Assembly (NCBI GenBank): GCA_977016875.1
Contig: CDRNST010000008.1
Span: forward strand, 1,550,001-1,614,000
DNA length: 64,000 nt
DNA from: Pavona decussata
Lineage: Eukaryota
Direction: 5' to 3'
Below, piece after piece: positions 54,316 to 57,339 of this stretch (position 1 is the first letter of the stretch; every line of letters starts with the position of its first letter). A program made the position numbers and the translations under genes. The notes beneath the pieces were generated by a model, which worked only from the letters and a program-made list of their open reading frames with translations, was not told where the DNA came from and did not search any database.

Positions 54316-55398
54316 ATGACAACTACCAGTCCACCTAATCTTCATTCTCGAGATCGCGTTGATTACGCTGCACTTCATGACGGCCGTTTGGATCCGAGTG
54401 CAGCGCTGGACGCAGAACAGGACGTGTTCCACGACAGCTTCTCAGATTTACCTCGTGATAGTACTTCTTCTCCAACGCCTCCGTTGCGTTTGACCGCCGC
54501 TTGACAGGCTTTAGCAGACCAGCTGGCCGCAGCGAAGGCGGAACGACAATCGCTGACGGTCGAGGCCGAGCTGCGAGCCATGCAAGAGGAATTGGCCTCA
54601 ATTCAAGCTGAAAATAAACGCCTGCAGGCGAAAGCAAAGGCGCCATGGTCGTCGCAAGCAAAAGGGGGCGTTCCTTCGGTGGACCAAGTTCGCTCTATTC
54701 CCGATGTCTCCGCTCGTGTTGCTAAAGAGCTGGACAAGCTGGGGATTGACTCCGCCGCCTCTGATGAGAGCAGTTCCGCCGAGGATGATGATCTCGAGCA
54801 TCGTAAAACCAAGAAAAGATCGGAAGGTAAGAAGTCCGGGAAACTTTCCAAAGTGACAAGTCGCATAGTACAGCCGCAGTTACGGCCGCAGAGCGACCTT
54901 TCCTTACCTGAATTTGTTGCCGGTTACTCCTCCATTTTATCTTTGCCTTTACTACCATCACAGGAAAAGCAGGCTCGAATGGAACATTTAACTACGCTCA
55001 TGTATCTGGCCGCTCAATTCCCGTGGCTGATCGTTCGTGATTTTCATGCCGCCGTCTTATTTGAGATCGAACGAGGCCGGGCCCACTGGGGCGACTCCTT
55101 CCATCATTTGGAAAACTGTTTCTTGCACCGTTCCTACGCTGGGAAGGCTGGCTCGTCTGGCTCCGGAGACAAATCTTCTTTGGCTCGTGGCAATTTTTCT
55201 TGTAAAGAGTGGCAAACGGGCAAGTGTTTCCACAAGAATGATCACTATGGGCTCATTCGTAACGAGCAAAAATGGGTGAAGCACATCTGCGGTAAATGCT
55301 TCCGAACCGATCAAACTATCTCTCGCCATCCAGAATCATCTTCTACTTGTCCTTTACAGCCTGCAGATTCGTCTTCCCCAAAACCTTCTGAGGAATGA
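54316..55398 (+). pseudogene. Ngaro gag (one premature TGA at 54502)
   Basis: Coiled coil, GKKSG, LSLPEFVAGY, FHAAVLFEIERG..W and C-terminal CKEWQTGKC..H..HICGKC..H..CP. Confidence 0.88.
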
Positions 55399-57327
55399 CT
55401 ACCCGATTTTGATGAATACAGCTTTGACATTTTAACTGACTTTTTGCTATCTTCACCTTCCTCGCTTCCTGACCCGGAGGGGGAAGTCTTCTCTTGGTCT
55501 CACGACAATTTTCCCATGGATGTTATGGGCGCGCATGAGAATGTCTCCTTGCGATCTTCATCGATATCGCCATCGCTGGTTCCTGACAATCTTCCTCTCC
55601 GGGTGGACTGGGGTGCGCAGGAACAATCTTCAGATGACTTGTTCATGGTTGATTATACTTCATATTGTTTGCACTTGCATGAATGTGTTCGTGCTTCAGG
55701 TCTCCCGAATTTTCGCTCTACTCGGCGAGCTGTTGTTTCTCGTTTACACATCACTAAATGGCGGGAGTATCTCCAGCATTATTTTGATAACATTGTTTGC
55801 GATTTCCTAGAATTTGGATGGTCTATTGATTACCAGAATTCCACCTTCCCTGTCACAGATTCGCACACACATCTGGGAACGTTACAGTATCCAAATGCGG
55901 TGGACGCTTACCTTTCAACTGAGATCTTACGGGGTGCTGTGATTGGTCCTTTTGCCTCGAACCCGATTTCAAGTGACATTGCTACTTCCCCACTGAACTC
56001 TGTCCCAAAAGCTGATTCGTCGGAGCGGCGTACTATTTTGGATCTGAGTTGGCCGCCAGGTACTTCTGTTAACGATGGGATTTCGTCACACTCCTATCTG
56101 GGACAGGACTTTGACTTGTATTACCCAACTGTTGATCTCATTGCCTCTAAAGTGAACAGGTATGGACGCCGTTGTCTTTTATTTAAGCGTGATCTCAAAC
56201 GTGCCTACCGTCAATTTCCCGTGGACCCTGGGGACTACAACCTGCTGGGATATTGTTGGCATGGCAACTTTTATTTTGACACTGTTTTACCTATGGGTCT
56301 TCGGATGGCGGCCATGGCTTGTCAACGCATTACGCGCTCGGTTTGTTTTATTTGTGAACAATCAGGTTATGACGTGGTAAGCTATTTGGATGACTTTATT
56401 GGTGTGTCCCTCCCATCTGAGGCTCCAGCTGCTTATCAGTTTTCAGGCTTTCTGTTATCGGAATTAGGTCTTGAGGAGTCGTGTAGTAAAGCCGTCCCAC
56501 CTTCAACTCGCGTCACCTGTTTAGGTGTGCTGTTTGATACAGAACTCATGACAATGTCAGTCACGCCTGATCGTCTGCTCGAATTGGAGACTCTCTTGCA
56601 CAGCTGGTCAGTCAAAAGATCCGCTTCTAAGAAACAACTGCAGTCTTTAATTGGCAAATTGGCCTTCGTTTGTAAATGTTTGCGGCAAAGTCGATTGTTT
56701 TTCTCACGGATGTTGGTCTTACTGCGCACTGTCAGACAAAATCATCATCATGTCAAGCTTTCTGCCGAATTTCGAAAGGATGTTTTGTGGTGGCTACGAT
56801 TCTTACGCATTTATAATGGTGTCTCTGTAATTCCGAGTAATGTCTGGACTGAACCTGATGCCATCTTCTCTACCGATGCCTGTCTTACTGGCTGTGGTGG
56901 CTTGTCGAGTACTCATTATTTTCATCCTGTTTTCCCGCCTGGCATACTTCAGCAATCTCTGGCCATTCACAATTTGGAACTGTTAGCCATTCTTGTGGCA
57001 GTACGCTTGTGGGGCCGCCACTGGCCTGGCCTTCGCATCCTAGTGCGTTGTGATAATTTTGCCGTGGTTCAGGCGCTCAATTCGGGGAAAGCACGGGATT
57101 CTTTCCTGGCCGCTGCTCTGCGAGAACTCTGGTTCGTTGCTGCTCGTCACGAGTTTGAACTGCAAGCCGCCCATTTAAGTTGTTCTGAGAACCGTGCCGC
57201 GGATTTGTTATCTCGCTGGCATTTAGACAACAGCTATGCTTCCCAGTTTTGTGCTATGCCTTTGTTTAGTGCTCTAGAGGAGGTTATTGTACCTGCCGAG
57301 TACTTTTGTTTCACTGATTCTGTGTAA
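55399..57327 (+). CDS. Ngaro reverse transcriptase-RNase H, open and in frame with gag
   Basis: RTILDLSWP, KRDLKRAYRQ, LPMG, YLDD; RNase H TDAC, LELLAI, CDN, AADLLSR. No stop between 55399 and 57325. Confidence 0.95.
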   Translation, partial: LPDFDEYSFDILTDFLLSSPSSLPDPEGEVFSWSHDNFPMDVMGAHENVSLRSSSISPSLVPDNLPLRVDWGAQEQSSDDLFMVDYTSYCLHLHECVRASGLPNFRSTRRAVVSRLHITKWREYLQHYFDNIVCDFLEFGWSIDYQNSTFPVTDSHTHLGTLQYPNAVDAYLSTEILRGAVIGPFASNPISSDIATSPLNSVPKADSSERRTILDLSWPPGTSVNDGISSHSYLGQDFDLYYPTVDLIASKVNRYGRRCLLFKRDLKRAYRQFPVDPGDYNLLGYCWHGNFYFDTVLPMGLRMAAMACQRITRSVCFICEQSGYDVVSYLDDFIGVSLPSEAPAAYQFSGFLLSELGLEESCSKAVPPSTRVTCLGVLFDTELMTMSVTPDRLLELETLLHSWSVKRSASKKQLQSLIGKLAFVCKCLRQSRLFFSRMLVLLRTVRQNHHHVKLSAEFRKDVLWWLRFLRIYNGVSVIPSNVWTEPDAIFSTDACLTGCGGLSSTHYFHPVFPPGILQQSLAIHNLELLAILVAVRLWGRHWPGLRILVRCDNFAVVQALNSGKARDSFLAAALRELWFVAARHEFELQAAHLSCSENRAADLLSRWHLDNSYASQFCAMPLFSALEEVIVPAEYFCFTDSV

Positions 57328-57339
57328 TTGTCCTCATAG

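Follow-up and report, generated by a model that had tools for sequence, protein, structure and literature searches.

Probable expression of the tyrosine recombinase of a Ngaro-type retrotransposon as a Gag N-terminal fusion from a spliced mRNA

INTRODUCTION

Retroviruses, errantiviruses, copia and caulimoviruses are all well known to make spliced subgenomic mRNAs. The env mRNA of avian sarcoma/leukosis virus has its 5' splice site inside gag and Env starts at the gag AUG, the unspliced RNA serving both as genome and as gag-pol mRNA. Foamy virus Pol is made from a spliced mRNA of its own, with its own AUG, a donor in the leader and no fused Gag residues. The subject of this paper is a member of the Ngaro elements, reportedly described by Goodwin & Poulter in 2004, that we found in 64,000 nucleotides of Pavona decussata DNA (assembly GCA_977016875.1, contig CDRNST010000008.1, positions 1,550,001 to 1,614,000 of the forward strand), a stretch referred to here as the window. 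Positions 54092-58944 of the window (+ strand) are one Ngaro-type tyrosine-recombinase (YR) retrotransposon, of the DIRS order.

Surveys of Ngaro elements record split direct repeats arranged A1...B1-A2-B2, the order gag, reverse transcriptase/RNase H (RT/RH) and YR, and the lack of a methyltransferase, a protease and a DDE integrase (PMC9210276, PMC3783388, PMC6681497). In Drosophila copia and plant Ty1/copia elements an internal intron sets the protein ratio, splicing removing pol to leave a Gag-only mRNA (PMC5580714), and the control of splicing in foamy virus has been discussed (PMC5294762).

We conclude that the YR of the window family is most probably produced as a fusion to the Gag N-terminus (GagN::YR), translated from an mRNA in which splicing joins a donor in gag to an acceptor ahead of an ATG-less YR open reading frame (ORF). 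A sequence-only reading of the window had proposed a 2.5-kb intron and a fusion of this kind, and the proposal now finds support in constraint on the donor codons, the phase of the acceptor, RefSeq gene models and a precise GT...AG loss in Nematostella.

RESULTS

Splice sites and join in the window copy

The donor lies where the sequence-only reading had placed it: positions 54820-54832 read TCGGAAG/GTAAGA (the slash marks the splice junction here and below), the last exon base being G54826 and the intron opening with G54827-T54828. Since gag codons begin at positions equal to 1 modulo 3, the glycine codon GGT occupies 54826-54828, within KKRSE-G-KKSGK, and the donor is in phase 1. Among the 49 GT dinucleotides of the two gag ORF pieces, only that at 54827 reaches 3 bits or more on a donor weight matrix, the weights of which are approximate and follow metazoan consensus frequencies. 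The proposed acceptor was found as described, the RT/RH stop codon being TAA at 57325-57327 and CCTCATAG/ ending at 57339, 12 nt past the stop, with exon 2 beginning at 57340. Joining the two sites gives G + GT CAG GAG TTG GCC.., which is in frame as predicted and is translated ..KRSE-G-QELALLRAKL... The claim that YR has no ATG of its own also holds, in that the first in-frame ATG (YR frame counted from 57342) is at 57981, codon 214 of 324, beyond the first catalytic arginine. The parts concerned are as follows.

54316..55398, + strand: gag ORF, with an N-terminal DY..LH.G motif, a probable coiled coil, an acidic patch, a basic cluster, a core and a Cys/His knuckle
54316..54826, + strand: proposed coding part of exon 1, comprising the gag AUG plus 170 codons plus 1 base; a homologous exon 1 is present in RefSeq models
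54824..54832, + strand: proposed 5' splice site AAG/GTAAGA, splitting the glycine codon GGT in phase 1 and scoring 7.1 bits; conserved in seven lineages and in sister copies L003 and L072-L074
54827..57339, + strand: proposed intron of 2513 nt, which takes in the gag core and all of the RT/RH ORF, as do the introns modelled in scallops and Nematostella
55399..57327, + strand: RT/RNase H ORF, 642-643 codons past the gag stop, with the gag frame retained
57328..57339, + strand: proposed 3' splice site, its tract TTGTCCTCATAG/ separating the RT stop from YR and its AG at 57338-57339; kept in L002 and L072-L073
57340..58313, + strand: tyrosine recombinase ORF, proposed exon 2, 324 codons, without a usable ATG

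Sister copies on public scaffolds, about 98% identical to the window copy, retain both donor and acceptor. Another sister copy (C64, minus strand) carries a 237-nt insertion exactly at the acceptor (L006:1263-1501), a position that we took as coincidence; the insert is bounded by terminal inverted repeats of about 45 nt (GGCCCCAGTTGTTCAAAGG...) and is probably a miniature inverted-repeat transposable element.

Conservation of the acceptor and the donor

Acceptors were compared among 31 loci with both an RT C-terminus and a YR N-terminus, drawn from about 12 families of this genome at YR identities of 32-100%, together with two loci in Nematostella, three in scallops and five on public (metagenome) scaffolds. 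The acceptor was picked by an automatic rule, which took the AG preceded by the 15 nt richest in pyrimidines, provided that no stop intervened before the YR homology. In all 31 loci a spacer of 12-142 nt follows the RT stop; it ends in a pyrimidine-rich tract and an AG, and the conserved YR N-terminus comes immediately after. The picked acceptor is in phase 1 in 29 loci. Of the other two, one has the same site in a copy with a frameshift, and in the other, Pecten, the rule picked an AG other than the annotated one, which is in phase 1. In most families the start of YR has no in-frame ATG nearby. The frame of YR relative to that of RT is 0, 1 or 2 across loci, and shifts even between near-identical copies (L037, L038 and L040) through the length of a T run, so that no conserved read-through or frameshift from RT is possible. 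A pyrimidine-AG site in phase 1 but in a variable frame relative to RT matches the expectation for the 3' end of an intron.

Donors were compared among seven cnidarian-type lineages (the window, contigs C339 and C49, Nematostella and three public scaffolds) with Gag about 33-45% identical. All seven have G/GTAAG (once G/GTACG) in phase 1, 3-7 codons ahead of a conserved (K)SGK motif. The donor glycine codon is GGT in every lineage and the codon after it is AAG in six of the seven, whereas the conserved glycine of SGK uses GGG, GGC or GGT and the SGK lysine mostly AAA. Within each lineage the gag ORF contains 16-67 GTs, and this donor is the sole one at 3 bits or more. The donor codons are thus under synonymous-site constraint. 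The comparison recommended in the sequence-only reading, of GGTAAG at synonymous sites and of acceptor phase, has come out in its favour on both counts. A conserved 5' site in gag is thus paired with a 3' site before the downstream ORF, as in spliced retroelements.

Two related loci differ in gene content. On contig C339 (minus strand), locus L024 keeps gag, donor, acceptor and YR and has lost most of RT, the end of gag being joined to the C-terminal part of RT, which makes it a non-autonomous copy with an internal deletion. A more distant Ngaro element on a scaffold of GCA_013332695.1 (L070) has a phase-1 acceptor ahead of YR, while its gag donor could not be placed with confidence; a fourth ORF after YR (L070:5681-6313) matches Lipase_GDSL_2 (SGNH hydrolase).

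Gene models encoding the fusion in other animals

When the uninterrupted YR of a sister (L034) was used in a word search, NCBI gene models longer than YR alone were among the matches. In the scallop Argopecten irradians, XP_069136376.1 (463 aa) consists of Gag residues 1-136 joined to YR, and the locus has a single phase-1 intron, ACAG/GTGAGG ... CCTGTTTCAG/GT, that contains the gag core and RT/RH. The same GagN::YR build, again with phase 1, is seen in Mizuhopecten XP_021350861.1 (462 aa) and in Pecten maximus XP_033729484.1 (475 aa, several paralogues). For the Nematostella copy L062, the donor GCT G/GTAAG and the acceptor TTCTTGCAG/AT were predicted before the gene model was found; the model, XP_048583323.1 (479 aa, isoform X1 of LOC116613531), lies at another copy and reads ..SSPLRKPNKA-D-SSALASLQKDL.., exactly at the predicted join. 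LOC116613531 also yields a 300-aa Gag product, and two more Nematostella models link different 5' exons to the same acceptor.

A precise loss of GT...AG

A second Nematostella copy, L071 (5440-5530), is without a 487-nt segment that is present in L062 (6019-6547). The segment opens with GTTGGT inside the RNase H region and closes with CTTGCAG at the YR acceptor. A precise loss from GT to AG is the mark of a reverse-transcribed spliced RNA, and it follows that this YR acceptor has been used by the splicing machinery; L071 is a retro-copy of an RNA spliced at the YR acceptor from a cryptic donor, as the comparison of the two copies indicates. RefSeq still models a GagN::YR product at the L071 locus, with a modelled intron that does not end in AG, which suggests that this model rests on transcript alignments rather than on ab initio prediction.

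Layout of the element and state of the window copy

The element has the order A1-gag-RT/RH-YR-B1-A2-B2, with split direct repeats in the Ngaro arrangement A1...B1 A2 B2.

54092..54295, + strand: A1 split direct repeat, the 5' end of the element, presumed to hold promoter and 5' untranslated region; 204 nt, 97% identical to 58543-58746
58359..58546, + strand: B1 split direct repeat; 188 nt, 99% identical to 58757-58944
58543..58746, + strand: A2 split direct repeat, partner of A1
58757..58944, + strand: B2 split direct repeat, partner of B1 and 3' end of the element

The Pfam matches of the RT/RH ORF, to RVT_1 at E=8.6e-5 and to RVT_3 at E=0.006, are weak and under the curated cut-offs; the ORF is 42-62% identical over 540-630 residues to the RT/RH of other Ngaro-type, YR-carrying loci, one of these relatives having a recorded PF00078 match; the weak Pfam matches and the homology together identify an ORF for RT plus RNase H. 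YR stands 3' of RT/RH in place of a DDE integrase. Its Pfam match to Phage_integrase (E=0.01) is under the curated cut-off; the H-x-x-R box GHSFRRGG and the C-terminal tyrosine were identified by eye, several homologues have PF00589 on record, and a sister YR 57% identical to that of the window has 444 homologues at E<=1e-10. No Dam or methyltransferase match was found in any ORF piece of the element at E<=0.1, and the 12 nt between RH and YR leave no space for a methyltransferase, a lack that sets the element apart from DIRS1-like and PAT-like elements. Homology is strong between the window element and many loci of the same gene order.

Of the window family, the 602-Mb genome contains one full copy, beside a small number of fragments that are 95-98% identical. 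The window copy is interrupted by in-frame stop codons at 54502-54504, within exon 1 and gag, and at 57537-57539, in YR, and near 54896 it is without 42 nt of the gag core (14 codons, ELSISYVSKDVKYD in sister copies) that are present in contigs of runs X1, X2 and X8 and in copy L003. With two in-frame stops and the 42-nt gap, it is a dead member of its family and cannot itself make the fusion protein; the sequence-only reading had not mentioned these defects. The public-scaffold copies at about 98% identity are free of the interruptions, and uninterrupted gag relatives of 374 aa (P0121 and P0245) are 93% identical to the window gag. When exon 1 (region 1-107 of the gag piece) was used in a word search, the family's own gag, P0121, was the sole match, and a gag-based search for further loci returned none. 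Degenerate repeats of about 85-98 nt with CCAATGTTGG-like words surround the element on both flanks (58975-59350 and 54000-54091).

DISCUSSION

Proposed expression of the three ORFs

In the scheme that we consider most probable, the unspliced full-length RNA would serve both as genome and as mRNA for Gag, and read-through of the in-frame UGA-CUA stop of gag would give Gag-RT/RH. The presumed read-through site is the following.

55396..55404, + strand: gag stop TGA followed by CTA, with RT/RH in the same frame, a probable read-through site; recurs in L067, L061, L063 and L065

TGA-CTA with an in-frame RT is found in the window, in a related scaffold (L067) and in three scallop elements, and L070 has TGA-CAG, again with RT in frame; the recurrence suggests that Gag-RT/RH is probably made by stop-codon read-through. 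No alternative acceptor ahead of RT was found in the window family, where RT continues in frame after the UGA. A fraction of the RNA would be spliced from the phase-1 donor in gag codon 171 (G/GTAAG) to the acceptor 12 nt past the RT stop, and the resulting mRNA of about 2.3 kb, translated from the gag AUG, would encode a GagN::YR of about 495 aa. This fusion would consist of the first 170 Gag residues, with the N-terminal motif, probable coiled coil, acidic patch and basic cluster, followed by the whole recombinase, and the efficiency of splicing would set the ratio of recombinase to Gag. The scheme accounts for the translation of a third, ATG-less ORF in a eukaryote.

We infer that GagN::YR is the working recombinase, and the roles suggested below for the N-terminal module that it shares with Gag are likewise inferred. 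The N-terminal motif is common to the scallops (RVDYAALHDG in the window as against KDYKAMHRG, KDYKAMNEG and RIDYRSLHEG), and the basic cluster of the Gag N-terminal part adjoins the donor; Pfam gave no match in the 170 residues. It is interesting to speculate that this part acts in oligomerization, in association with Gag or in nuclear import, and the co-assembly of the fusion into particles, which the sequence-only reading had raised, is equally a matter of speculation. A wider picture, which we put forward tentatively and as possible rather than probable, is that an ancient intron of conserved phase is built into the Ngaro cycle, at least in cnidarians and molluscs; that the recombinase is always a fusion to the Gag N-terminus with its DY..LH.G motif, coiled coil and basic cluster; that this module carries the recombinase to Gag assemblies or to the nucleus with the cDNA; and that the spliced RNA can itself be copied. 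If this were true, the spliced RNA, which keeps both termini, would give rise to RT-less GagN-YR elements and to partly spliced retro-copies such as those of Nematostella.

Alternative explanations

The recombinase might instead be translated from unspliced RNA, by read-through or frameshifting from RT, by reinitiation, by internal ribosome entry at the pyrimidine tract or from a non-AUG start, the GT and the AG being incidental. Unspliced contigs do cross both donor and acceptor, YR lies in the RT frame directly past a single stop in some families (L034 and L038), and a survey says of the YR ORF that it may be in frame or frameshifted, and nothing further (PMC3783388). Nevertheless, we consider this explanation quite improbable: the RT-YR frame takes all three values, even among near-identical copies, no ATG is conserved, the AG keeps its phase in 29 of the 31 loci, the donor 2.5 kb upstream bears synonymous-site constraint, and the precise GT...AG loss ends at this very AG. 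A different doubt concerns the evidence itself, namely that GGT-AAG was kept for the Gly-Lys of Gag and that annotation joined the ORFs through a chance GT and AG. The codons are fixed at the donor Gly and Lys, however, whereas codon choice varies at the conserved Gly and Lys nearby, and the donor is the single good GT of each gag ORF. The conservation of Gly-Lys at the protein level would suit such a coincidence, and RefSeq models can be partly ab initio, but the L071 model, with its intron not ending in AG, would not be expected from an ab initio predictor, and the GT...AG loss in Nematostella is a footprint of splicing. A combination of coincidence and artefact of gene prediction is therefore, in our view, highly improbable.

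Splicing might also be real without the fusion being the working recombinase, either because it serves to down-regulate the genomic RNA or because the N-terminal part is removed or irrelevant. The absence of any Pfam match in the 170-residue N-terminal part and the different donor positions of the cnidarian-type and scallop families would be in keeping with this, yet all the lineages examined preserve the frame across the join, with phase 1 at donor and acceptor alike, which would be needless for mere down-regulation, and YR has no alternative start. We regard this explanation as improbable.

A number of observations weigh against the expression of YR by splicing. In scallops the distance between donor and KKSG motif is about 65 codons greater than in the cnidarian-type families, so that donor position is not strictly homologous across phyla. 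RefSeq models are automatic, and the RNA support behind them is not visible. A low-depth contig of a sister copy (X2 record 14) is without exactly 57328-57339 and has no acceptor tract. As to transcripts, 19 sequencing runs of this species contain parts of the element, none of them recorded as RNA, and four probable RNA contig sets were used. No gag-YR joint was present in these four, whose RNA status is a guess, whose contigs represent majority forms and which leave 54092-54678 uncovered. A 1.7-kb contig spans 54679-56420, unspliced through the donor; as each of its ends runs into unrelated sequence, it represents a truncated piece of the element within another transcript or locus. Low-depth contigs span 56391-58546, unspliced through the acceptor. 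Given that most of exon 1 (54092-54678) lacks cover, that the data consist of contigs and that their RNA status is a guess, the absence of the joint is uninformative, and these data are not a case of a family expressed without junction reads.

Comparison with known systems

We found no account of native splicing in Ngaro or DIRS elements in the literature covered, which did not extend to the primary Ngaro papers, so that an earlier remark is possible. Spliced subgenomic mRNAs as such are known, and it is splicing from gag to YR as the route of expression of the third ORF that appears to be undescribed for YR retroelements. The translation of that ORF in YR retrotransposons has been left open by the surveys, and a conserved gag-YR intron would be a concrete answer. 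It would explain many 'uncharacterized protein' models in cnidarian and mollusc annotations and would mean that ORF-based annotation mis-describes the recombinase as a protein of 320-350 aa; it also predicts a class of partly spliced retro-copies and raises the issue of how genomic RNA escapes splicing.

In repeat layout, ORF order and missing enzymes, the window element agrees with Ngaro elements as surveyed. The surveys, however, present YR as a separate ORF3, which may overlap or be frameshifted, without a mechanism of expression, whereas the window element has a conserved intron that would lead from gag codon 171 to YR. The RefSeq models XP_048583323.1, XP_021350861.1, XP_033729484.1 and XP_069136376.1, with YR 43-52% identical to that of the window, resemble it in giving GagN::YR through one phase-1 intron, but are labelled 'uncharacterized protein' only and have not been recognized as retroelement products.

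The likeness to copia and Ty1/copia elements is that an intron within a retrotransposon would set the protein ratio and that unspliced RNA must partly escape splicing; in those elements, however, splicing drops pol and gives Gag, whereas in the window element it would drop the gag core as well as pol and give the recombinase. As with foamy virus Pol, an enzyme of the element would come from a dedicated spliced mRNA and not solely from a Gag fusion made by recoding; foamy virus Pol differs in having its own AUG, a leader donor and no Gag residues, in place of a donor internal to gag and a fusion to Gag. The closest analogue is env of avian sarcoma/leukosis virus, which shares with the window element a donor in gag, a common AUG and the first Gag residues. 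In the virus, six Gag codons are shared and the product is an envelope protein, whereas in the window element about 170 would be shared and the product would be an integration enzyme. The retroviral strategy of a gag donor and a shared AUG would in this way extend to an order of elements that has neither an envelope gene nor a DDE integrase.

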